Both the position numbers and the translations under genes were made by a program. The notes beneath the pieces are model-generated. The model saw nothing but the letters and a program-made list of their open reading frames with translations. It was not told where the DNA came from and did not search any database. A DNA stretch of 64,000 bases from IMG/VR virus record IMGVR_UViG_3300017917_002466, positions 1 to 64,000 of that record, one strand, 5' to 3'. Shown here piece by piece: positions 15,581 to 55,232 of this stretch (the stretch's first letter is position 1; each line of letters begins with the position of its first letter).

Positions 15581-15664
15581 AACCTCCTGATAGGTTAAAA
15601 AATAAAGTGGTAATCCTTACTTATCAGGTTTCAGGAAAAGGGTGGCCACCCTCTGTCCCACTTT
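15581..15664 (-). ncRNA. Structured leader, HEG-associated motif copy 1 (three-way junction plus RBS hairpin)
   Basis: AAAGTGG-GACAG-AGGGT ggcc ACCCT-TT-TCCT gaaaCCTGATAagta AGGA-TTA-CCACTTT, then AACCT atcagg AGGTT. Confidence 0.7.
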
Positions 15665-18393: not shown

Positions 18394-19533
18394 TTACACC
18401 AAATCTTCATCCATAATAGCTGAAGGCTGCCAACTAGGATCACCTAAATCTTCCTGAGCATTAATTGCCTGAACTTCGTCTTCTTCTTTTCCTTCTTCCC
18501 ACTTACCTACTTGTACATTATACTCATCTTCTACATTCTTGGTTTCATAACTTTTTCCATTATAATCTTCTGTAGAAACAAAATATAAAGCCCAAAGTAA
18601 TGCTGTTACACAGTCATCGTGTTCGTGCCTTCCTGCCGCAAAAACATTTGGCTTAATTTCTTCAAATCTACTAAGTTCATAGATTGTTGGTTCGTCACAT
18701 ACTCTAATTCTATCTTTTTCAAGATATTCTTTAAGTAACATATTAGCTTTGAGTTTAGACTTTCTTGTACTTCTAACTCCTAAAGCATTTGGGTCTAAAT
18801 TAATCAAGTCCTCATATTCAAACTCGTGCCAAATTGTATCTGCTACAGTTCCACCAATATCATTGTTTTCAACCATCATATGGGCATTATTATAGAACTT
18901 GGCGACTGATACACATATCTGTGCAAAGTCTCTTGGATTAATCATATTGTTTCTGTAAATTGCTACTTGTTCAATATCATATTCATTTTTAATCCAAAGG
19001 ACTTGAATAACTGAATAATCTTTTCCTATTCCTTTACCAGTATCAACACCAAGCACATATTCTCCGCCGTGAACTGGTTGTCTATAAATTGACAAAAGTC
19101 CATTCCATTTGGTTGCGATTGGGTCTTTAAACTGAATTCTTTCAAGAACGTCCGAATCAATAAGAGTTGATTGACTTCCAAGAAATTTACAATTTTTACT
19201 TATAATATTATTTGTATAATAAGAATTATCAGAAGAATTAACTTGAAGTAATGTATAAACTTTTTCTTTCTTTTTATTCAATTCTATTTTAACTATTTCT
19301 TTTAAACCATTTTTTGTTTCAAGTAAATCGCCTTCAAGAAGATATTTTGATTGTTCTTCATTACCATTTATAATAAAAGTATGGTCAGTAGATACTTCAA
19401 TAATATTCTCATCTTCTAAAGTAAATTTTAAAATTTGAACTTTTTCTAAAACCTCACCGATACCAGCAAAAGTTTTAAAACCTTCAGGTGTTTCAACTTC
19501 AAAGTTTGATATAAATTTAGTTTTGGTTTTCAT
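18394..19533 (-). CDS. gp17: Large terminase C-terminal (nuclease) part fused to split-intein IntC
   Basis: First 114 aa intein-like (STDH block B; VYTLLQV...YYTNNIISKN/C), then CKFLGSQSTLI, YVLGVDTGKG.GKDYS, HDDCVTAL. Confidence 0.92.
   Translation of the reverse strand: MKTKTKFISNFEVETPEGFKTFAGIGEVLEKVQILKFTLEDENIIEVSTDHTFIINGNEEQSKYLLEGDLLETKNGLKEIVKIELNKKKEKVYTLLQVNSSDNSYYTNNIISKNCKFLGSQSTLIDSDVLERIQFKDPIATKWNGLLSIYRQPVHGGEYVLGVDTGKGIGKDYSVIQVLWIKNEYDIEQVAIYRNNMINPRDFAQICVSVAKFYNNAHMMVENNDIGGTVADTIWHEFEYEDLINLDPNALGVRSTRKSKLKANMLLKEYLEKDRIRVCDEPTIYELSRFEEIKPNVFAAGRHEHDDCVTALLWALYFVSTEDYNGKSYETKNVEDEYNVQVGKWEEGKEEDEVQAINAQEDLGDPSWQPSAIMDEDLV
19192..19533 (-). other. Split intein C-fragment (114 aa), ends Lys-Asn, +1 Cys
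   Basis: Hint-domain blocks B, F and G visible in the translation. Confidence 0.85.
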
Positions 19534-20518
19534 TCAATTTTTCCATAAATTGTTTTTCAGTTAAATAGTTTTTAGCCGAATTTATTTTACGAGAACAAAT
19601 ACATAAGTTTTTAAAAGAACCTATTTCTCTCGGATCAATCTTATTTACAAATCCATAATAAACAGAAATTTTATGGTCAATAGTTGGTTGCATAGAATTA
19701 GTATTAAAATGTCTATGATCTATTTTTTCATATTCTAAATTTCCAACTAATTTTTCTCCAGTATAATAATCATATCCATCAAATATTCTATAAACTCTAA
19801 TCCTATGTTTTAAAGTTTCATTTCTAACTAAAGACCAATATTTTTCATATTCAGTTTTAATTTTTCCAATCAACCATTTACCATTTTCTTCGTTACTTTT
19901 TCTTATTTTATCATAAACCCAATCTAATTGAGTATTCCACTCTACACCATATTTTTCTAAACAAGTTTGTTTTCTTTTATTTAAAATTATATTCAATTCT
20001 TCTTCAGTTAAATTTCTCCAAAATTTTTTTCTCTTTTCATTAATTTCTTTTTTATTTTCATTCAAAACTTTCCATCTAGCTTTAATACAAGACTTCATTA
20101 AAAAATTATGACTAACTCCATATTTTTCCTGAATAGTATTACTTTGTTTATTTTTGACATTTTCAACTTCCATAACATTATCGGCACCATATTTTTCTAA
20201 ACAAGTTTGTTTTCTTTTATTTGCTTCTTTTTTAACATCTCTTATTTCAAAAGATTTTTTAATTTTATCTCTAACATATTCTGATTTTTGTTGATGTTTT
20301 AAGCAACAAAATTTAGCATAACCTTTATTGTATCCATAAAATTTAGTTTCTTTTCCACAATATAAACATTTTCCTTCGTCTTCTTTTTTAATATGTTTAT
20401 CATAATATTCTTGTAAACTTATATTATGTTTTATTTTAAGATGATATTGACTAAAACTAATAATAGTTAAATTAGTTTGAATATTACATTCTTTACAAAA
20501 GAATTTTTCTTTTTCCAT
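19517..20518 (-). CDS. Free-standing HNH homing endonuclease with N-terminal Zn finger
   Basis: CKEC...HLKIKH, CLYCGK, KQTCLEKYG repeats, TIDHKISVYYGF...NLCICSRKINSAK. Confidence 0.85.
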   Translation of the reverse strand: MEKEKFFCKECNIQTNLTIISFSQYHLKIKHNISLQEYYDKHIKKEDEGKCLYCGKETKFYGYNKGYAKFCCLKHQQKSEYVRDKIKKSFEIRDVKKEANKRKQTCLEKYGADNVMEVENVKNKQSNTIQEKYGVSHNFLMKSCIKARWKVLNENKKEINEKRKKFWRNLTEEELNIILNKRKQTCLEKYGVEWNTQLDWVYDKIRKSNEENGKWLIGKIKTEYEKYWSLVRNETLKHRIRVYRIFDGYDYYTGEKLVGNLEYEKIDHRHFNTNSMQPTIDHKISVYYGFVNKIDPREIGSFKNLCICSRKINSAKNYLTEKQFMEKLNENQN

Positions 20519-20543
20519 TTTTGACTCCTTTATAAATAAAATT

Positions 20544-20604
20544 TAGAGGGACATATAGGAGATTTGACTCGCCTATCGCAGAACGCCAATTCTGCTTACC
20601 TCTA
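20544..20604 (+). ncRNA. HEG-associated motif copy 4, inverted relative to the HNH gene
   Basis: TAGAGG-GACAT-ATAGG agaTTTGACTCg CCTAT-C-GCAGAA cgccaa TTCTGC-TTA-CCTCTA; TATAAATA at 20531-20538 (+) and 20606-20613 (-). Confidence 0.6.
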
Positions 20605-20706
20605 TTATTTATATTTTTTACTTTTAAAAAATTCCCCAATTTCAATATTTTTTTCTACTTTCATCTTTATATCTCTAATATTTATAATAGTTTGTGAATT
20701 AGCGCA
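20605..20706 (-). other. Split intein N-fragment (33 aa, starts Cys)
   Basis: Block-A-like CANSQTII...IGEF after the extein EFQ. Confidence 0.8.
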
Positions 20707-21510
20707 TTGAAATTCTTGTGCGAATCTGATTGGGTTAGTATCAGCAATGGTTTGCTTTTTCCATTTTTCATCTCTACCAGGAACTTCCCACCAGCCAACA
20801 CTTATAGGAAAGAAGTTATTAGTATTTTCTGTTCTGATAGCCTTAGCCCAAAATTCATAAAAGTGGTTCAAACCCTTTGGGGTTGAAACCATAATAATCT
20901 TGTTGCCTTCATAGCTTGAAATAACTGGATAGGTTGATGTAATGAATTCTTCGGCAACGTGAGAAGGAACCTTGGCAAACTCATCCAAGAAAAGAAGGTT
21001 AACGGTTAAAGAGGTCAAAGCTTCCGCAGAGGTAGCAGATGCTAGTATCCTTGAACCATTCTCAAATTCAACAGACTTTTTATTCCAACCACTTTCTGTT
21101 AATCCTTGTTGTAGCCAAATAGGAAGCATTGTTATAGCTGTTTTAACTCTTTTTAAAATATCTACAGCGGCTTCTTGTTTATGAGCCACGATTGCAACAG
21201 TCTTATCCTTATTGAATAATGCATACCAAAGTAAAAAAATGGTTGAAACAGTAGTCTTTCCACTCTGTCTGGCTATCTTTACGATACAATGTCTCTTGTT
21301 ATTTGGGGTTTCTACGAAGGCTTTTAATACTTTCTTTTGCCATTCATAAAGAACAATCTTTGACTTTCCTTTTTTACCAGTAATAATATAAAAGTAATTC
21401 TCAGCAAAGTAAACAATATCCGTTTTACACTTGATGATTTCATCAATCATCTTTTGAGTATATTCAATCTTTTCACCAACTTTTCTTAAATTAGGATTTC
21501 CAAAAAACAT
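20605..21510 (-). CDS. gp17: Large terminase N-terminal (ATPase) part fused to short split-intein IntN
   Basis: ARQSGKTT Walker A, LLFLDEFA Walker B, VSTPKGLNHFY; ends FAQEFQ/CANSQTIINIRD...IEIGEFF. Confidence 0.93.
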   Translation of the reverse strand: MFFGNPNLRKVGEKIEYTQKMIDEIIKCKTDIVYFAENYFYIITGKKGKSKIVLYEWQKKVLKAFVETPNNKRHCIVKIARQSGKTTVSTIFLLWYALFNKDKTVAIVAHKQEAAVDILKRVKTAITMLPIWLQQGLTESGWNKKSVEFENGSRILASATSAEALTSLTVNLLFLDEFAKVPSHVAEEFITSTYPVISSYEGNKIIMVSTPKGLNHFYEFWAKAIRTENTNNFFPISVGWWEVPGRDEKWKKQTIADTNPIRFAQEFQCANSQTIINIRDIKMKVEKNIEIGEFFKSKKYK

Positions 21511-23001: not shown

Positions 23002-23167
23002 TTAATTTTTTCCAATTTTATTTTTAAATTCTTCTTCTGTCATATAATTTTTTACACTATTAGTACTTCTACTACAAATACATAAATTATTTATGAGTTT
23101 GATTAATATGAGACATTAAACCTTGTAAACTTTTACATTCTTTTCTGCAAATCTTACAAATTTCCAT
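23002..23167 (-). pseudogene. Internally deleted Zn-finger/HNH endonuclease remnant
   Basis: MEICKICRKECKSLQGLMSHINQTH joined out of frame to NNLCICSRSTNSVKNYMTEEEF, matching both ends of 19517..20518. Confidence 0.8.
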
Positions 23168-23172
23168 AATTT

Positions 23173-23244
23173 ACCTCCAACTAGGTTAAAAATTGGGATA
23201 ATCTTTTGAGTTGGCAAAAGAAACGCCCGTCGGCGCTGTCTCCC
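23173..23244 (-). ncRNA. HEG-associated motif copy 2
   Basis: GGGA-GACAG-CGCC gacg GGCG-TT-TCTTTTG ccaact CAAAAGA-TTA-TCCC, then ACCT agttgg AGGT. Confidence 0.7.
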
Positions 23245-23251
23245 TCTATAT

Positions 23252-26938: not shown

Positions 26939-26965
26939 CTTAGTCCTCCTTTTCAAATTTTCAAT

Positions 26966-27104
26966 TTAATACATTTTGGTATGTTTAACTAAATTATCTT
27001 CTTTAGTTAATAACTGAAGATTTGTATAATGACACAATTTATTAACCTCTTCTTCAGTTTTAGCAGTCACTAAAGGAATGATATGGTCTATATGATACCT
27101 ATTA
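26966..27104 (-). pseudogene. 3' remnant of HNH endonuclease
   Basis: NRYHIDHIIPLVTAKTEEEVNKLCHYTNLQLLTKEDNLVKH, near-identical to C-terminus of 35027..35755; no start or N-terminus. Confidence 0.85.
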
Positions 27105-27110
27105 TTTTAA

Positions 27111-27167
27111 AGTAGAGATAATCTTTGTGTTGGCAAAGAAAAGTTAATTACTCCCTGTCTCTCTACT
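27111..27167 (-). ncRNA. HEG-associated motif copy 5
   Basis: TATAAATA (27172-27179), then AGTAGAGA-GACAG-P2 (G-U rich)-TCTTTG ccaaca CAAAGA-TTA-TCTCTACT. Confidence 0.7.
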
Positions 27168-27204
27168 TATGTATTTATACTTGAATGACTTCTGAACGCA
27201 AAAT

Positions 27205-27230
27205 GGGGTTGGTGATTTCTCACCAACCCC
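27205..27230 (-). terminator. Intrinsic terminator after major capsid gene
   Basis: GGGGTTGGTGA-gaaa-TCACCAACCCC followed by ATTTT. Confidence 0.85.
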
Positions 27231-27260
27231 TATTTTTACCGAGTATCTTTACTCAGTTAA

Positions 27261-28640
27261 TTACCATCCACGAACAGCAGTAGAAATTCCAGAAGGAAGA
27301 TTACTGGTTGTTGCACCCGGGATAAGCTTATTAACATTGTAGAACGGAATCAATCTGTAATAACGTCCACTACCAAGCAATGTATCGGTGATAGCATATC
27401 TGCTCATAACACCAATTCTTGGTGTGAAGTCAGCAGGGTGAATTGCCCTATTGGTAAGACCCATAATATAAGGACTGAAGATAATACCACAGTCACTGAT
27501 ACCATTGCCTTTGTAACCAATCAATGCATACTCTGTACGAGCATATTGATCACGATATACGTCCATTGTTCCATTCAACTTACCAATTGCGGCCATAACC
27601 TGAGTTGGGTTAACATTCTGGTTATAGTTGACAAAGGTATGTCCAGCAGCTTGAAGTGCAGTTGCAATCGCAGGAGATACGATAACAAAGTTACCTGGAC
27701 CTCTACGAGTTGTAACAGCAATCTTATTGGACTGATAGACAATTGCGCTAATGATGTTCATGTACTTTTCACCAGACCATCTTCCGTCGATACCAGTGGA
27801 GTTTACACCACCAGTAAGGTCAACGGCACCGATAACCTCTCCACCATTATTGGTGTTGACGGCTGCGGCCTTCATTCTGGCAATAAGCTCTCTGTCAAGC
27901 TCAGCAGTAACCTCGTACTGAAGGAACTGAACCATTTCCCTCTCAATGTCAATACCGTGCATAGCCTTTACGTCCTGAGCCGCTTCAAGGCTGAAGCTAG
28001 CTGCAAGCTTTCTGGTCTTAGCAGTAATTGCAAGCTGGTCAATTCTCATTCTAAGTTGAGGCCAGTCACCACAACCATTAGCAGACTCAGCAGTATCACA
28101 AGTGTTTGCGATAGTCCACGTTTCACCGGCGGATGTTGCAACACCTGTACCAGATGTATCATATACTCCAGTATCAGCAGAACTATTGTTCCAAGAACCT
28201 TGCAATATGCCAGATGTTCCAACCTGATTACCAGTGTATCCACCGTATTCAGGAACCTTATCCCAAGCAGCTTCATTTCCATTACCATCATCGTAAACAA
28301 CTCGCATAGCATAAGCAAGTCCAACTGGTGTTGACATTGCCTGCACGCCTACGACCTTGTTTGCGAAAAGGTCAGGGAAAGTACGTCTGACAAGGGCAAG
28401 GGCGATTGGTCTGAAAATCCAAGAGTCAGAAGCTGCGGCACCATCGGTGAATCCACCCATATTACCATAGTTCATATTACCCTGAGAAGTTTCAGTTAAA
28501 ACTTCCTGTCCGTTAAAGTCCTTTCTCTCTTGATTCTCCAAAAGAGTTGCAAGGTTTTCCTTAACGTATCTGTCCTTAATGTCCTTAATAGACATCTTAC
28601 CTTCGGCAGATTCCCATTTCTTAATTAGTGAAAGACTCAT
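27261..28640 (-). CDS. gp23: Major capsid protein
   Basis: LALVRRTFPDL.A..VVGVQAMSTPVGLAYAMR, TAKTRKLAASFSLEAAQDVKAMHGID, FTPRIGVMSRY. Confidence 0.97.
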   Translation of the reverse strand: MSLSLIKKWESAEGKMSIKDIKDRYVKENLATLLENQERKDFNGQEVLTETSQGNMNYGNMGGFTDGAAASDSWIFRPIALALVRRTFPDLFANKVVGVQAMSTPVGLAYAMRVVYDDGNGNEAAWDKVPEYGGYTGNQVGTSGILQGSWNNSSADTGVYDTSGTGVATSAGETWTIANTCDTAESANGCGDWPQLRMRIDQLAITAKTRKLAASFSLEAAQDVKAMHGIDIEREMVQFLQYEVTAELDRELIARMKAAAVNTNNGGEVIGAVDLTGGVNSTGIDGRWSGEKYMNIISAIVYQSNKIAVTTRRGPGNFVIVSPAIATALQAAGHTFVNYNQNVNPTQVMAAIGKLNGTMDVYRDQYARTEYALIGYKGNGISDCGIIFSPYIMGLTNRAIHPADFTPRIGVMSRYAITDTLLGSGRYYRLIPFYNVNKLIPGATTSNLPSGISTAVRGW

Positions 28641-35775: not shown

Positions 35776-36564
35776 TTACCAATTTGCCCACGGATCACGA
35801 CTTTCACACTCATTCGGTTTTGGTTGATAATTTACTGATGTCTTCTTATCATCTATAGTTTGCTTTATATCAAACTTATCAGTCTTTTTATTCGTAAAAT
35901 CAGCAATAGGAGCCGCCGAAGTAATAGAAGTTGTCGCGATTTTCTCATCTTTAAATGGTTTCACCAAAAACTCCCATACGTGTTGTTTAGATAAAAGATT
36001 CATCATAATTTCATCTTTGACTTCTACTATCTCATAACAGTATTTATTATATTTTGCAAAAATATAATCCCCTGCCTTTGGTATATATGGAGCAAAAGCT
36101 TTTGGATTAGTTTGAATATCGTTATACTGAGAAGATTCCCAAAAATGTCGCTTAGATACATAGATGCTAAAAGAATCCATACCTTCAATTCCAAACTTTG
36201 ACCAAAGTTTTTCTTCCCTTGGAAGATTAAAGAAAGCCATAATCTGGAATCTTCTTTCATATCTTCTGTTATTATCTTCTCCCCAAATCTTATCATAGGA
36301 CTTATCATAACTCGTAACATAGTAGTCCATACATACACCGTGTTTATTATAAGCTTCAGTAACTAACACATCAAAAAGTTCTCTTTCGTTGTTATAATTT
36401 CCGACTGAACCGGCATAACTACTATTTACACACTTAGTTATATACTCATTTGGAATATCCGAGTATTGTAAATAAGTACCAGAAATATTGGAAGCCGATG
36501 ATTCGATTTCTATAATTTCTTCATCAAACCATCCAAGAGTATCTACTGATACAAAGTCTGCCAT
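35776..36564 (-). CDS. gp14: Neck (head completion) protein
   Basis: LVTEAYNKHG..MDYY...DKIWGED, SKFGIEGMD, PKAGDYIF. Confidence 0.85.
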   Translation of the reverse strand: MADFVSVDTLGWFDEEIIEIESSASNISGTYLQYSDIPNEYITKCVNSSYAGSVGNYNNERELFDVLVTEAYNKHGVCMDYYVTSYDKSYDKIWGEDNNRRYERRFQIMAFFNLPREEKLWSKFGIEGMDSFSIYVSKRHFWESSQYNDIQTNPKAFAPYIPKAGDYIFAKYNKYCYEIVEVKDEIMMNLLSKQHVWEFLVKPFKDEKIATTSITSAAPIADFTNKKTDKFDIKQTIDDKKTSVNYQPKPNECESRDPWANW

Positions 36565-39500
36565 TATAACCTTGTCCTTTCGCTACGTTCACTCTCCAAG
36601 GTATACAATGCTGTTGTATTATCTTGCTTATAATAAGTGAATTTATTGTTAATTCTCGTAATTCTACCAGTTGCCATTGCGAGCAATATCTCCATCAATT
36701 CTTCAAAAGTTTTTCCATCAACAGTAGTTGATAATAATGCGGCAATAATAGTATTTGGATCAGCAGAAACAACACCACCAGAAACAAATGAATTAACAAT
36801 ACCAGGTGAATTAAAAGTAAACTGATCTTGTATTGCAATTATACAACTAGCTGAAATTTCATCAATAGTGGAACTTAACGACCAATTTGTATCTCCGTGT
36901 TCTATAATTCCAGCTGATGTTGCGGATAAATCTGATAATGATGCAACTATACCATAATCAACTGAGCTTATATTTACACTTGGAAAGTTCTTATATGCAA
37001 TAGTAGAATTCCAAACTGCTGATGCATCATATTCTGATGTATGAATATGATTTGGAAGAATTACATATCCAGTTGTAGTATCTGGAATTTCTTTCCAAAT
37101 ATGATTAATATAAGCTGTATGAGTTGATCCATCATAAGCTGTTACTAATCCAACCTGATCCTGTCCATAACCTGATCTCAAAAATATTAACTGACCAATA
37201 TAAACATCATCAAAGTCACTTGCCCACTGATTAAGAGATATAGAAGATAATGTTCCAGCTGTTACTCTTCCTTCATTAACGTGTTCTCTACCTGGATGAG
37301 CATAAATGATAAAATCCGATGAAGAATCTGGTATTATCTTCCAATCTCTATCAACAAGGGCAATATGATTAGAACCGTTATACTCAAGAATTAATCTACT
37401 CTGACCTGCTCCTATTCCTCCAACTATTGCAATAAGTGATGGATCATATGCTCCACTATAAGATGCAGCACTTGAGTCTAAAGTTATTGAATTAGAGGTT
37501 GCACTTATTACAACACCACTATAAATAGTTGTTCCCCCAACTGCAACTGATAATTCTCTTAATTTTTTACCAGAAGAATTATTAATATTATGTTTAGCAA
37601 TTGTTAACTCTTCATCCCATACTCCATTAACCATATCAATTTTGGTAGCAGAGGTAAAAGCAGAAACTATAACTTCTGGAAAGTTTTGATATGCACTTAC
37701 ACTTCCATAAACACCATTATTAATACCCGAAATCTGTACTTGTGGAAAGTTTTGATAACCAGAAACTATAACTGGGTTTGTAATAGAATTAACGGTTCCT
37801 GCTGATACTTGGACTTGTGGAAAGTTTTGATAAGCACTAACAATTGTTGGATTAATAACATTATTTATTGTTCCACCTGATACTTGAACTGTTCCACTTA
37901 TATTAATGCTTGGAAAATTCTGGTAAGCAGAAACGACTACTGCATTTGTTACATTATTTACAGTTCCACTTATTACCGTATAGTTCATCTTATCAAGATT
38001 TGCACTTACTGTAACTTGAGGCATATTTTGATATGCACTTACACTTCCATAAACACCAGTATTGATTCCGGATACTTGAACTTGTGGAAAGTTCTGGTAC
38101 GCAGAAACTATTACAGCACCAGGAAGAATAATTTCATTAACTGAATAAGCTTCAACAGCTGAACCATTAAAAACAAATGATTCTTCAATAGCTGATATTG
38201 AAGCATTTTTTATTGCAACATAATCTATTATAGTTGTTGCAGAAATTTCAATACCACTATTAATTCCAGATACTTGAACTTGTGGAAAGTTCTGATAAGC
38301 GGATACTGTTATAGGATTAATTACGTTATTAATAGTTCCACTAGAAACTGTATAATTTGTTTTATCTAAATTAGCTGATACTGAAACTTGAGGAAAGTTA
38401 GTATAAGCTGATGTTCCAATGTATAGTCCTCCATTAACACCTGATACTTGAACTCTTGGAAAATTTTGATAAGCTGATACTATAACTGGATTAGTTATAT
38501 TATTAATAGTTCCGCTTGAAACTGTATAATTTATTTTATCTAAATTAGCGGATACTGTGACTTGAGGAAAATTCTGATAACCAGAAACTATAACTGGGTT
38601 TGTAATAGAATTAACGGTTCCTGCTGATACTTGGACTTGTGGAAAGTTCTGGTACGCAGATGTTCCAACAAATAAACCTCCATTTATAGCTGATACTGTA
38701 ACTTGTGGGAAGTTCGTATATGCACTAACTGTAACTGAATTTGCCAAAGAATATCCTGTCTTATCGTTATTAGTTCCAACGGTGACTGGGTTTGTAACAG
38801 TAGAAACTGTTCCACTAGAAACAGTATAGTTTATCTTATCCAAGTTAGCTGATACAGTTACCTGTGGGAAGTTAGAATATGCTGAAACAGTCTTTTCTTC
38901 TCTAGATACATTTTCAATTGTCTTTTCAACTGAATTAGTTCCAATTGAAATAGTTGAAGCATCAAATTCTCTAACTGCTCTTGCAATAACGTCTTTATTA
39001 ATATTAGTATTTGCAAGTTCCATTGTACCTGGAGCTTGAGCATAAACTGTAATTACTCTACCATAATGAAGTTCCTTGGTATTTTCTTTAAGAGCAAAAT
39101 CAATAACTATTTCGTCTGGAAGAACAAAAGCCGATGTTGCAAACTTATAATAAGTTTGCCAAACACCTACTCCTGCGCTTGTCATTGCATAATAATCGCC
39201 GCTAAATGTTGGTGAAATTGATGCGTGAACTGATCCAGAAATATCATTATAAAATTCTGTAAGTGCTATAATTTGTCTTACTGAATTTGCTTCAATAGCA
39301 ATTTCACCATCAGGATTCTCCATTGTACCACTCATATTATAAAAATAAACTTTGATTTCATAAATCTGTGAACCAGAGATTGGTACAATAACTTCCGTAG
39401 GAACTGCGGCTACAAATCTTGTATTTTGAATAATAGAAGCAACATCTGTTTGGCTTGCAATTTGACCAACTGGAAGTTTGCTCTGAATTTCATTTGTATC

Positions 39501-42176
39501 AGTAAGGATTGCTCCAGTATCTGCTGAAATCTGATTTACAGTTGTCTGTACATCAGATGTAGCAAGTCCAAGCTGTACTCTGGTCCAATAGTTTGCTCCA
39601 AATTCAGCACTTGTTAATGCTCCATCAGTAACTGCGTTAGATGTAATTACGTTATTTGCCATATTACCAACGCTAACACTTAATCTTCCACCCACAACCT
39701 GAGTAGCTGTTAATGCAGTTCCTCCTGCTTGTCTTAAATCTGCTGAAAGAGGAACTGTAGTTGAAGAAACTTGAACTTGTGGAAAGTTTTGATAAGCAGA
39801 TACAATAACAGGATTTGTAACCGTGTTTATTATTCCGCTAGAAACTGTATAGTTAGTCTTATCTCCATTAGCAGAAACATATACTTGTGGAAAGTTTTGA
39901 TAAGCTGATACTGTTATAGGATTAATTACGTTATTAATATTACCACCAGAAACATAGACTTGTGGGAAGTTCTGATAAGCTGAGACTGTAACTGGAATTG
40001 TATTATCATATCTTGCACTACTAGTGATAATAACTCCTGTTCCATTGTTAGTAACTTGCCAGAATCCTCTTAATGTTAAGTCTCCACCGGAACAACTTGA
40101 AGCAATAACTACTCTTCCAGCACCATCTAGCTTAATGGAGTTAGAAGATATCATATTATTAAATTGAATTCCTCCACGATAATCTCTAAATGCCATTGTT
40201 GCACTTGGTGTACAAACAAATGTTGGTGAAGCCAATCCCGCTGGATTTGCGTCAATACATCTTTTAAAAACATATACTCCATTTGCACAAGTAGTAAATG
40301 TTCCATTAAATTCGCTATTGTGAATACTTCCAGAATCTAGTGTAACATCTCCAATAGCACAATCATCCATTACATAGTCTTGACCAACTGATGTTCCAGA
40401 AATCCATTCTACATTTTCAAAAGATGCATCAGCAATACTTTGACCATTTAATCCAATAATTGCTCTTCCAATAAATCTCCACGCATCATAAGCAGAAACA
40501 AGAACTATACTAGAGTCTGGCTTCAAATAGAATCTCTTTAAATTAATTTGTTGTGCTAAATTTAATGCATTTGCTAGATTATTAGAAGGATATGTAGAAA
40601 TACCATTGACTCCAAGGGTAGTTCCTGAGAATCCATTAATGGTATCAATCCATATTCCATTATCATAAACTACCATTCCCATCTTGTTATAAACTGCATT
40701 AGCAATATCGGTAACGGATGTACCAGCTGCTACTGCATTCATAATTACATAATCTAAATTTAATATATCATTTGTATTAGTTCTTCCTGCTACAAATAAT
40801 ATTTGGGAATTTCCAGTTGAATTAACATGAGTTGTTGAATTTAACACATAGGAATATGTTGAATTAGAAGTTCCATTAAGAATTGCAGTACTAGCATTAC
40901 TAATTAATTCATATGCTGATGTTATATAATTGTATGCGTGGACATTAACTATACCCGCATTAGTTGGTGTACCAGCTTGTAAATATCCATAAATTGAAAT
41001 AGTAGATGGAACCCTTGTGCCTAAATTAAAAGTTAAACTTGCAGATAGTGGGACTGTTCCACTTGTTTGAATTTTCCATAAACTTCCATCATTAGCAGAG
41101 GTATTTAAATAAGAACCGGACAAATTTGTTCCGCCAATTACTGATCCTCCATTTGCTGTTAATGATGATGCATTATTAGAAACAATTTGATTATAAATTC
41201 CTTTTAATGAATTAGCAGAAATAAAAGTACTTCCAGTACTTCCATCAGCTATTTGTTGTAACATTCCTGCAATAGTAGATGTTCCACCATTCAAAGAAAC
41301 TGGAGTTCCTATTCCAATTTTATTCCAATAGTCTATTGCATAATCAGCTGAAGTAATTGATCCATCTGTAACAGAAGATACATTTACTGATGGAAAATTT
41401 GTATAGGCGGATGTTCCAACAAATAAACCTCCATTTATAGCTGATACTGTAACTTGTGGAAAGTTTGTATAAGCGGATACTGCAACAATTGGATGATTAG
41501 TTTGAGCGGATACAGAAACAGAATTAACAACTCCGTTAACTGTTCCTGCAACATTTCCAGTAACTGAACCAACTGATCCGGTTACGTTTCCAGCAACTGC
41601 TGTTATAGAACCGCTTGAAACTGTATAATTTGTTTTGTCTAAATTAGCTGATACCGTAACTTGTGGATGGTTTAAATATGCTGATGTTCCAACAAATAAA
41701 CCTCCATTTATAGCTGATACCGTAACTTGTGGATGGTTTAAATATGCTGATGTTCCAACAAATAAACCTCCATTTATAGCTGATACCGTAACTTGTGGGA
41801 AGTTCTGATATGCTGAAATAGTTAATGGACTACTTACTGTATCAATAGAAGCATCATAATTAGTTATTCTTATTAAAATAGTTTGTTCAAGAACTTGATC
41901 TGATTTTAACTTAATTGACATATAATCAGACGATGCAGAAATTTCAGAAGCTGAAATAACCAAATACCATTTTCCAGTCGAACCAAGTTGAATTGGATTT
42001 GCTGCAATTGTTGATGAAGTAGGCGCACTGGCATCGTCTGACCATAAATAAACTGATTTACTTGCATTAGTCATTGATGTCCAAGCGCTTGTCGTATAGT
42101 ACTGTGTTGCGCTTGCGGCATTTATTAAAGGAAAGACAACTTTTGTGGCTTGAGACCTTTTTCTGCTAACTTCCAT
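36564..42176 (-). CDS. Large repetitive virion appendage/fibre protein (1870 aa)
   Basis: About 22 copies of SAY(Q/T)NFPQV; adjacent to neck gene; duplicated domain near C-terminus. Confidence 0.75.
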   Translation of the reverse strand: MEVSRKRSQATKVVFPLINAASATQYYTTSAWTSMTNASKSVYLWSDDASAPTSSTIAANPIQLGSTGKWYLVISASEISASSDYMSIKLKSDQVLEQTILIRITNYDASIDTVSSPLTISAYQNFPQVTVSAINGGLFVGTSAYLNHPQVTVSAINGGLFVGTSAYLNHPQVTVSANLDKTNYTVSSGSITAVAGNVTGSVGSVTGNVAGTVNGVVNSVSVSAQTNHPIVAVSAYTNFPQVTVSAINGGLFVGTSAYTNFPSVNVSSVTDGSITSADYAIDYWNKIGIGTPVSLNGGTSTIAGMLQQIADGSTGSTFISANSLKGIYNQIVSNNASSLTANGGSVIGGTNLSGSYLNTSANDGSLWKIQTSGTVPLSASLTFNLGTRVPSTISIYGYLQAGTPTNAGIVNVHAYNYITSAYELISNASTAILNGTSNSTYSYVLNSTTHVNSTGNSQILFVAGRTNTNDILNLDYVIMNAVAAGTSVTDIANAVYNKMGMVVYDNGIWIDTINGFSGTTLGVNGISTYPSNNLANALNLAQQINLKRFYLKPDSSIVLVSAYDAWRFIGRAIIGLNGQSIADASFENVEWISGTSVGQDYVMDDCAIGDVTLDSGSIHNSEFNGTFTTCANGVYVFKRCIDANPAGLASPTFVCTPSATMAFRDYRGGIQFNNMISSNSIKLDGAGRVVIASSCSGGDLTLRGFWQVTNNGTGVIITSSARYDNTIPVTVSAYQNFPQVYVSGGNINNVINPITVSAYQNFPQVYVSANGDKTNYTVSSGIINTVTNPVIVSAYQNFPQVQVSSTTVPLSADLRQAGGTALTATQVVGGRLSVSVGNMANNVITSNAVTDGALTSAEFGANYWTRVQLGLATSDVQTTVNQISADTGAILTDTNEIQSKLPVGQIASQTDVASIIQNTRFVAAVPTEVIVPISGSQIYEIKVYFYNMSGTMENPDGEIAIEANSVRQIIALTEFYNDISGSVHASISPTFSGDYYAMTSAGVGVWQTYYKFATSAFVLPDEIVIDFALKENTKELHYGRVITVYAQAPGTMELANTNINKDVIARAVREFDASTISIGTNSVEKTIENVSREEKTVSAYSNFPQVTVSANLDKINYTVSSGTVSTVTNPVTVGTNNDKTGYSLANSVTVSAYTNFPQVTVSAINGGLFVGTSAYQNFPQVQVSAGTVNSITNPVIVSGYQNFPQVTVSANLDKINYTVSSGTINNITNPVIVSAYQNFPRVQVSGVNGGLYIGTSAYTNFPQVSVSANLDKTNYTVSSGTINNVINPITVSAYQNFPQVQVSGINSGIEISATTIIDYVAIKNASISAIEESFVFNGSAVEAYSVNEIILPGAVIVSAYQNFPQVQVSGINTGVYGSVSAYQNMPQVTVSANLDKMNYTVISGTVNNVTNAVVVSAYQNFPSINISGTVQVSGGTINNVINPTIVSAYQNFPQVQVSAGTVNSITNPVIVSGYQNFPQVQISGINNGVYGSVSAYQNFPEVIVSAFTSATKIDMVNGVWDEELTIAKHNINNSSGKKLRELSVAVGGTTIYSGVVISATSNSITLDSSAASYSGAYDPSLIAIVGGIGAGQSRLILEYNGSNHIALVDRDWKIIPDSSSDFIIYAHPGREHVNEGRVTAGTLSSISLNQWASDFDDVYIGQLIFLRSGYGQDQVGLVTAYDGSTHTAYINHIWKEIPDTTTGYVILPNHIHTSEYDASAVWNSTIAYKNFPSVNISSVDYGIVASLSDLSATSAGIIEHGDTNWSLSSTIDEISASCIIAIQDQFTFNSPGIVNSFVSGGVVSADPNTIIAALLSTTVDGKTFEELMEILLAMATGRITRINNKFTYYKQDNTTALYTLESERSERTRL
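41645..41798. repeat. 66-nt exact tandem repeat inside the 1870-aa gene
   Basis: Period 66 (starts 41645, 41711, 41777). Confidence 0.85.
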
Positions 42177-54575: not shown

Positions 54576-54585
54576 ATAATTTTAG

Positions 54586-54669
54586 AGTATGTTAGGACAG
54601 GGAGGCATCCTTTTCTGACACGAACAGAATTACTGACATACTTCTTTCAAATACCTTATTCGTGGAGGT
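54586..54669 (+). ncRNA. HEG-associated motif copy 3
   Basis: TATAAATA 54571-54578; AGTATGTTAG-GACAG-GGA ggca TCC-TT-TTCTG acacgaa CAGAA-TTA-CTGACATACT; ACCT tattcgtgg AGGT. Confidence 0.72.
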
Positions 54670-54673
54670 TCCT

Positions 54674-55232
54674 ATGAGTTGCTTTATTATCTACAAAACT
54701 ACGTGTCTTGTTAACCAAAAAATCTATGTTGGTCAGCATAATACTTCAGCTAATGATGGTTATTTAGGCACTGGAAAAATAATCAAGTTAGCCATTAGAA
54801 AGTATGGCAGAAAAACTTTAAAAGAGAAACAATAGAGTTCTGTACTTCTGCTAACGTAAACGAAAGAGAAGTTTACTGGGTTGGTAAGTTAGATTCTACG
54901 AACCCTCAAATCGGTTATAACATCACTAGAGGGGGAGATGGTGTAATAATTGTTGGTAGAAATAATCCTATGCTTGGAAAAAACAAAGTCAAAATTCAAG
55001 AAATTTGATGAGTTTAAATCATCAAGATTTTAATGGAAAGTTAAATCCAAGATACGGAAAAGGAAAATACCTTTATATTTTTTCATCCAAAGAAAAAAAT
55101 ATTAAAACTAAAAGTCTCACTGAATTTTGTAAAAATCAAAATCTTAATTTGAATACACTTAATTGGTGTTTTAGAGTTGGTCGAAAATTTCATAAAGGGT
55201 GGGAAATTAAAAGAATCTTGTTAACTTCTTGA
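54674..55232 (+). pseudogene. GIY-YIG (Seg-like) endonuclease with two frameshifts
   Basis: MSCFIIYKTTCLVNQKIYVGQH..GYLGTG / NFKRETIE..EREVYW..GYNITRGG / ..LMSLNH..; both shifts in A runs. Confidence 0.8.

Follow-up and report, generated by a model that had tools for sequence, protein, structure and literature searches.

An inverted leader RNA element, predicted by comparative analysis, facing a homing-endonuclease gene in a split phage terminase locus

Why should a folded RNA element that elsewhere precedes homing-endonuclease genes (HEGs) on their own strand be found, between the two halves of a split phage terminase gene, on the strand opposite such a gene? Homing endonucleases are selfish genes that sit inside essential phage genes, so their expression has to be held down, and the controls known so far are hairpins in cis and protein autorepression. 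The locus lies in a 64,000-nt window, i.e., the whole stretch of DNA that was analyzed, which is the first 64 kb of a single 253,664-bp contig with 33% G+C of a T4-like phage assembled from a pond metagenome. A sequence-only reading of this window proposed that an inverted motif copy between convergent late promoters encodes a small late RNA, whose loop pairs in trans with the ribosome-binding site (RBS) of the HNH gene. Here, we report that the observation itself is confirmed, with all of its coordinates correct, and that its interpretation is supported in part: comparative evidence favors the idea that the loop-RBS pairing done in cis elsewhere is encoded here on the opposite strand, whereas transcription of that strand is inferred.

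The split terminase locus and its folded spacer

The element occupies an 86-nt spacer between two minus-strand ORFs (Table 1). The terminase large subunit is a fractured gene: the Terminase_6N and Terminase_6C domains lie on separate ORFs, the N-part ends with a 33-aa intein fragment, the C-part begins with a 114-aa fragment (...IISKN before a Cys; the intein motifs were read by eye), and a free-standing endonuclease ORF lies between them and overlaps the C-part by 17 nt. This is the arrangement of Dassa et al. 2009 (PMC2677866), including the atypical short-N, long-C break point described there for a freshwater (Lake Gatun) terminase locus. The endonuclease ORF matches Pfam DUF7487 (1.3e-11) and PHROG 3339 "homing endonuclease" (1.5e-14); the HNH-like motif in its C-terminus was seen only by eye.

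Table 1. Coordinates of the locus, of the cis leader copies, and of further features of the window and genome.
Feature	Position	Strand	Description
Antisense late-promoter box	20531-20538	+	TATAAATA, T4-type late-promoter consensus, opposite the endonuclease gene; a start about 6 nt downstream (20544-20545) would coincide with the first base of P1
Three-way-junction element	20544-20604	+	61 nt; P1 20544-20549 with 20599-20604; junction GACAT 20550-20554; first hairpin 20555-20576; C 20577; second hairpin 20578-20595; junction TTA 20596-20598
Proposed anti-RBS loop	20563-20570	+	TTTGACTC in the loop of the first hairpin, complementary to GAGUCAAA of the endonuclease mRNA
Second occurrence of the loop word	20520-20527	+	TTTGACTC, complement of GAGTCAAA inside the HEG RBS
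T-rich tract	20605-20625	+	Directly after P1; possible 3' end of a short RNA (inference only); complement of the minus-strand promoter and of the last terminase N-part codons
Sense late-promoter box	20606-20613	-	TATAAATA; overlaps the last codons and the stop (20605-20607) of the terminase N-part; likely late promoter of the endonuclease mRNA
Endonuclease initiation region	20516-20528	-	GGAGTCAAAAATG; Shine-Dalgarno 20525-20528, proposed target GAGTCAAA 20520-20527, ATG 20516-20518
Endonuclease ORF	19517-20518	-	333 aa, homing-endonuclease type, DUF7487 domain, N-terminal C2H2-like motif
Terminase N-part	20605-21510	-	Pfam Terminase_6N
Terminase C-part	18394-19533	-	Pfam Terminase_6C on residues 162-316
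Fractured terminase gene	18394-21510	-	Both halves and the endonuclease ORF
Small ORF	20564-20710	+	Not conserved among variants
Cis leader copies in the window	15604-15664; 23190-23249; 27110-27168; 54585-54643	-; -; -; +	Four of the 16 copies
Cis leader copies elsewhere in the genome	66704; 69602; 71491; 110151; 112531; 136179; 148573; 158810; 159851; 171354; 187567; 189316	(-) given for 110151	Twelve of the 16 copies
C2H2-like ORF	23087-23167	-	26 aa (MEICKICRKEC...HINQTHK), behind a cis leader; looks like the stump of a DUF7487-type endonuclease gene
Orphan cis leader region	26957-27260	-	The 27110-27168 leader with no RBS or intact ORF behind it, after a strong hairpin plus T run that follows the 459-aa ORF at 27261-28640
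GIY-YIG-type gene	54662-55232	+	Behind the 54585 leader, apparently in pieces: a 57-aa ORF, then GIY-YIG-like residues in the next 170 nt outside any called ORF
Repeat-rich ORF	36564-42176	-	1870 aa, full of diverged internal direct repeats of about 100-220 nt (repeat families D2-D7)

The spacer is predicted to fold into a three-way junction, P1 enclosing two hairpins, and the fold of 20539-20605 gives this on either strand; on the plus strand it is better than all 200 shuffles, with a z-score of -3.2. The loop is complementary to the 3' half of the Shine-Dalgarno plus the spacer of the HEG. For the octamer match alone, 11 of 2000 shuffles do as well; however, the loop/RBS identity recurs with different sequences in relatives (see below). 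A simple terminator scan found no terminator on either strand at the locus. The plus-strand small ORF and a tiny upstream ORF in the sense leader are not conserved among variants, and both were dismissed.

Cis leaders, orientation and relatives

We scanned the whole genome with a descriptor (a P1 of at least 5 bp, GACA[GT], 20-70 nt, TTA, then the P1 partner), which found 16 further copies, each in the same orientation as the ORF that follows it. Most of them sit 3-12 nt after a TATAAATA-type box (CATAAATA or GATAAATA in four copies, none at 15604) and 15-25 nt before a Shine-Dalgarno. Their order is late promoter, P1, GACAG, hairpin, UU, hairpin, UUA, P1 partner. The ORFs tested behind them carry GIY-YIG, NUMOD3, HNH or DUF723/DUF4379 domains, hallmarks of homing endonucleases. 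P1 and the second hairpin covary strongly, with double changes in 10 of 11 predicted pairs. In the 14 copies that have an RBS, the longest complement between the motif interior and the next 45 nt always joins the second-hairpin loop to the 6-7 nt ending at the Shine-Dalgarno, and that sequence differs from copy to copy. This is therefore a cis leader with a loop-to-RBS pseudoknot. Rfam gave no match, neither at the gathering threshold on the whole 64-kb window nor by E-value (up to 10 on 20480-20650) on the locus and on 12 cis copies.

A covariance model (R1) built only from these 16 cis copies scores the element at 20544 at 12.8 bits on the plus strand and 1.8 bits on the minus strand. Please note that this is a weak, partial match: the model aligns only P1 and the junction bases, which are GACAT, C and TTA here instead of GACAG, UU and UUA, and the inner 41 nt are treated as an insertion. 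The inner hairpins do not resemble the cis consensus, in which the second hairpin is UCUUUG-loop-CAAAGA; it is GCAGAA-loop-TTCTGC here. The TATAAATA box lies 5 nt before TAGAGG on the same strand, within the range of the cis copies. The sequence-only reading is thus right in substance that the motif reads in consensus orientation on the plus strand, but the copy is a divergent member, and two corrections are needed: the loop that matches the RBS is in the first hairpin, whereas the cis copies of this genome use the second hairpin and a target on the same RNA. Cis copies using the first hairpin loop do exist in other phages: L064 and L065 pair TTGCTAC with GTAGCAA, and L083 pairs CTACTAA with TTAGTAG (L and V labels denote contigs and variant lineages of relatives).

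Protein-guided and pattern-guided searches of viral and metagenome contigs and of a large protein collection recovered the same terminase/spacer/endonuclease locus in four diverged lineages, and a structure-based DNA pattern then recovered the same leader in front of other endonuclease genes; in three of these the gene is a LEM-3-like GIY-YIG protein, with NUMOD3 in two of them, unrelated to DUF7487. In total, the reverse-oriented arrangement ("type-R", as opposed to the usual "type-F") was found in at least eight lineages of uncultured phages, in front of two unrelated nuclease families. BLASTN of the locus and of the 3.3-kb region against 50,697 phage records gave no cultured relative with the element, and the 15-mer TAGAGGTAAGCAGAA used as a probe gave mostly chance hits. 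Written on the endonuclease strand, every variant has, in order, TATAAATA (GATAAATA in L003), P1, TAA or TTA, hairpin A, AA or G, hairpin B, CTGTC or ATGTC, the P1 partner, 3-8 nt, TATTTATA (absent in one lineage), 1-3 nt, GGAG and the start codon; the sense box is 2-9 nt from the AGAGG of P1. Read on the other strand, the junctions become GACAG (GACAT in the window and V4 lineages), UU (C in those two) and UUA or UAA, i.e., the junctions of the cis family in the correct order. R1 hits these relatives only on the strand antisense to the endonuclease gene, with 30.2 bits for L137, 30.1 for L087, 24.1 for L099, 21.8 for L061, 20.1 for L003, 16.0 for L050 and 10.5 for L051, and E-values down to 1.5e-5 in an 83-kb search. 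An antisense TATAAATA box lies 6-8 nt before P1 in 10 of 11 variants, the same geometry as in cis copies. The exception is the V3 lineage (L050, L060, L090), which has the longest loop/RBS identity but only TAAAAATA, 12 nt from P1.

The loop tracks the RBS. In nine of ten type-R variants, the longest identity between the motif and the initiation region, read on the same strand, is 8-10 nt, and it always falls in the loop of hairpin B; L137, found later, adds an eleventh variant and another 8-nt allele by reading. The seven alleles are GAGTCAAA, GAGTCCAA, GGAGTAGAAT, AGGAGTGT, AGGAGATTT, GGAGCAAT and GTGAGGTA. Only 2-22 of 2000 shuffles do as well, and each motif matches its own RBS better than the RBSs of other variants. 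The identity extends 3-6 nt beyond the Shine-Dalgarno core, and in the window and V2 variants the loop lacks a full GGAG; ribosome binding alone therefore does not explain it. The one weak case, L087, has only a 4-nt identity, although by reading it still gives six pairs on the antisense strand if one G-U is allowed. Pairing whole motifs against initiation regions in an RNAduplex cross-matrix was not discriminating, because it ignores intramolecular structure.

All 11 type-R variants fold into P1 plus two hairpins. The stems of both hairpins show several Watson-Crick pair types at nearly every position, and P1 changes compensatorily in L137; these pairs were counted from anchored folds, since a MAFFT alignment of the type-R copies was not in structural register. 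The spacer is as conserved as, or more conserved than, the flanking coding DNA in most comparisons: against L059 it is 95/95 identical where the flanks are 85-90%, and against L051 and L052 it is 82-88% where the flanks are 67-73%. A related fractured terminase locus (L085 10372-10560, and L098) has lost the endonuclease ORF but keeps the motif, both TATAAATA boxes and the last few endonuclease codons that carry the RBS of the terminase C-part; a short hairpin with an A run replaces the gene. In L003 (587-2911) the terminase N-part is a 774-aa ORF, and on the near-identical contig L062 the equivalent ORF carries extra intein-like insertions (precomputed Pfam Intein_splicing, weak, and LAGLIDADG_3) in addition to the split intein at its end.

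A search for a third element on the sense strand, complementary to both the loop and the RBS, gave no exact match within 4 kb and no wobble-tolerant match at a conserved place in the terminase loci. In two GIY-YIG loci, a short element complementary (allowing G-U) to the loop and RBS word lies at the same distance upstream of the sense promoter, about 57 nt (L088) and about 59 nt (L091) 5' of the motif on the sense strand, where the chance expectation is about 0.4-0.6 per locus; this element is not seen in the terminase loci. Neither G-U against A-C asymmetry nor fold energy tells the strands apart, with 16 G-U pairs on each and equal summed energies. Among sequencing runs, only DNA runs of pond and sediment metagenomes hold the sequence, plus one RNA-labelled run with an unstranded 243-nt contig of a relative covering 20508-20742, which says nothing about strand.

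A putative antisense RNA and the competing readings

We consider it about as likely as not that the element is a reverse-oriented copy of a promoter-plus-leader RNA module that this phage group uses to control homing-endonuclease genes. In the usual orientation, a late promoter drives an mRNA whose 5' end folds into the three-way junction, and one hairpin loop pairs with the bases at the Shine-Dalgarno on the same RNA. The cis family establishes the rule that the RNA carrying the GACAG junction has a hairpin loop complementary to the endonuclease initiation region, and in the reverse-oriented copies this rule holds only for the strand opposite the gene. In this view, the plus-strand box would start a short late RNA at about the first base of P1, by the usual geometry of T4 late promoters and as in the cis copies; this RNA would fold into the same junction, expose UUUGACUC in its first hairpin loop, pair in trans with GAGUCAAA, and so lower translation of the endonuclease mRNA. 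The box lies between the motif and the RBS, so the RNA would not itself overlap the RBS and only the loop could reach it, which would explain why the loop has to be re-matched whenever the RBS changes. A long duplex with the fully complementary 5' leader of that mRNA could also form. The fold, its orientation signature, its conservation, and the covariation of the stems and of loop with RBS are shown by our analysis, while transcription of the plus strand, the end of the RNA and repression of translation by the pairing are inferred; it is also not obvious why an mRNA and its repressor would both be made from late promoters. The sequence-only reading further claimed that the transcript would run antisense into the terminase N-part; this remains only a possibility, since the T-rich tract that follows P1 directly might stop it.

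The main rival, which we regard as less likely though not exclusive of the first, is that the element acts on the sense strand only, as the 5' leader of the endonuclease mRNA, like the I-TevI and Aeh1 mobE controls. The minus-strand late promoter would lie in the 5' arm of a long helix, whose 3' arm, the complement of TATAAATA, ends 1-3 nt before the Shine-Dalgarno; read-through transcripts from the terminase gene would be poorly translated, and late transcripts or terminating ribosomes would open the helix. The plus-strand TATAAATA would then be no promoter but only the 3' arm, and the RBS-like loop would have some other role on the sense RNA, such as a ribosome standby or decoy site. Indeed, the extended helix between TATAAATA and TATTTATA is predicted in nine of ten variants, the terminase N-part stop codon lies inside its 5' arm, and there is published precedent for late promoters embedded in hairpins upstream of homing-endonuclease genes, including fractured genes (PMC2988022; PMC2677866). 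However, this reading explains neither why the loop stays identical to the spacer bases beyond the Shine-Dalgarno through seven alleles, nor why the junction bases are the exact reverse complement, in the right order, of GACAG, UU and UUA of the cis family. In the minimum-free-energy folds, the GGAG is unpaired, outside the helix. In the window and V2 variants the sense box is only 2-4 nt from the AGAGG of P1, so late sense transcripts, given T4 late start sites, would lack the 5' arm of P1.

A DNA-level operator is unlikely. The two direct copies of the 8-10-bp word have a constant spacing (43 bp apart in four lineages and 48 bp in V3), and T4 intron endonucleases bind operators that overlap their promoters (PMC2988022), so that the endonuclease or another protein might bind them, with autorepression of the kind shown for I-TevI at its late promoter. 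But the same arrangement precedes two unrelated nuclease families with different DNA-binding parts, the stems covary as base pairs, and the cis family shows that the element works as RNA with a complementary loop, not an identical one; we saw by eye no similarity of the word to the terminase sequence at the insertion point. Still less likely is a functionless relic, i.e., a cis leader flipped by recombination between the perfect 9-bp inverted repeat TATAAATAA/TTATTTATA that flanks the element, although a flip of a first-hairpin-type cis copy would by itself create a loop identical to the RBS. The inverted state is found in at least eight diverged lineages, with conservation of the spacer usually at least that of the flanking genes, compensatory stem changes, and concerted changes of loop and RBS; a relic would decay.

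The locus points to an undescribed RNA family, without an Rfam match, attached to endonuclease genes of at least four families, and to a version of it that appears to have moved from cis to trans simply by facing the other way, the evidence for which is a loop that tracks the RBS through seven alleles. If confirmed, this would be a clear natural case of a modular, re-targetable anti-RBS RNA in lytic phages, and a second antisense RNA linked to a homing endonuclease in T4-like phages, after CfrI. A more speculative view, which we hold to be improbable on present evidence, is that the GACAG three-way junction is one portable scaffold used by aquatic T4-like phages as a programmable silencer of selfish endonuclease genes, either in cis, as a leader whose loop clamps the RBS, or in trans after inversion, as a convergent late antisense RNA whose loop is re-matched to each new RBS; the invariant junction bases could be a docking site for a phage or host factor or a small ligand, which would make endonuclease expression conditional.

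Comparison with known systems

The C4 antisense RNA of phages P1/P7 and the CI RNA of P4, to which the sequence-only reading likened the element, are small structured phage RNAs whose exposed loops are complementary to a target that covers a ribosome-binding site, and the cis copies of the present family, like C4, lie upstream of their target on the same transcript. The resemblance is apt as a working principle but an analogy only: there is no sequence or structure match in Rfam, the fold is a different three-way junction, the target is a homing-endonuclease gene and not an antirepressor or immunity gene, and the copy in the window is encoded on the opposite strand between convergent late promoters.

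The closest biological precedents are the late-promoter hairpins of T4-type endonuclease genes and CfrI. In the control of I-TevI, I-TevII, I-TevIII, segB and Aeh1 mobE (PMC2988022, and the papers of Gibb and Edgell cited there), a T4-type late promoter likewise lies directly upstream of a homing-endonuclease gene and inside a predicted helix next to its RBS, with the endonuclease within an essential gene; here the minus-strand TATAAATAA is predicted to pair with TTATTTATA. In those systems, however, the helix itself sequesters the RBS in cis and no second RNA is involved, whereas here the Shine-Dalgarno lies just outside the helix, a conserved three-way junction sits at the apex, and a loop covaries with the RBS as an identical word, not a complementary one. 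CfrI of cyanophage S-PM2 (Millard et al. 2010, as summarized in PMC2984593) is an antisense RNA of a T4-like aquatic phage that overlaps a homing-endonuclease gene and its neighbor and is expressed together with them; it is about 225 nt, was detected experimentally, has no known function, and no three-way junction or loop-to-RBS match has been described for it, while the present RNA is only predicted, unproven at the RNA level, and would not overlap the RBS it targets. The fractured genes of Dassa et al. 2009 (PMC2677866) share the genomic setting, i.e., a split-intein host gene with a free-standing endonuclease gene between the halves, TATAAATA in an upstream hairpin and overlap of the endonuclease 3' end with the downstream half, but that paper describes simple hairpins with two complementary motifs, and not a three-way junction, a loop matched to the RBS, or an antisense reading. 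What is new here is the three-way-junction family itself, its use in both orientations, and the allele-by-allele matching of a loop to an RBS on the opposite strand.
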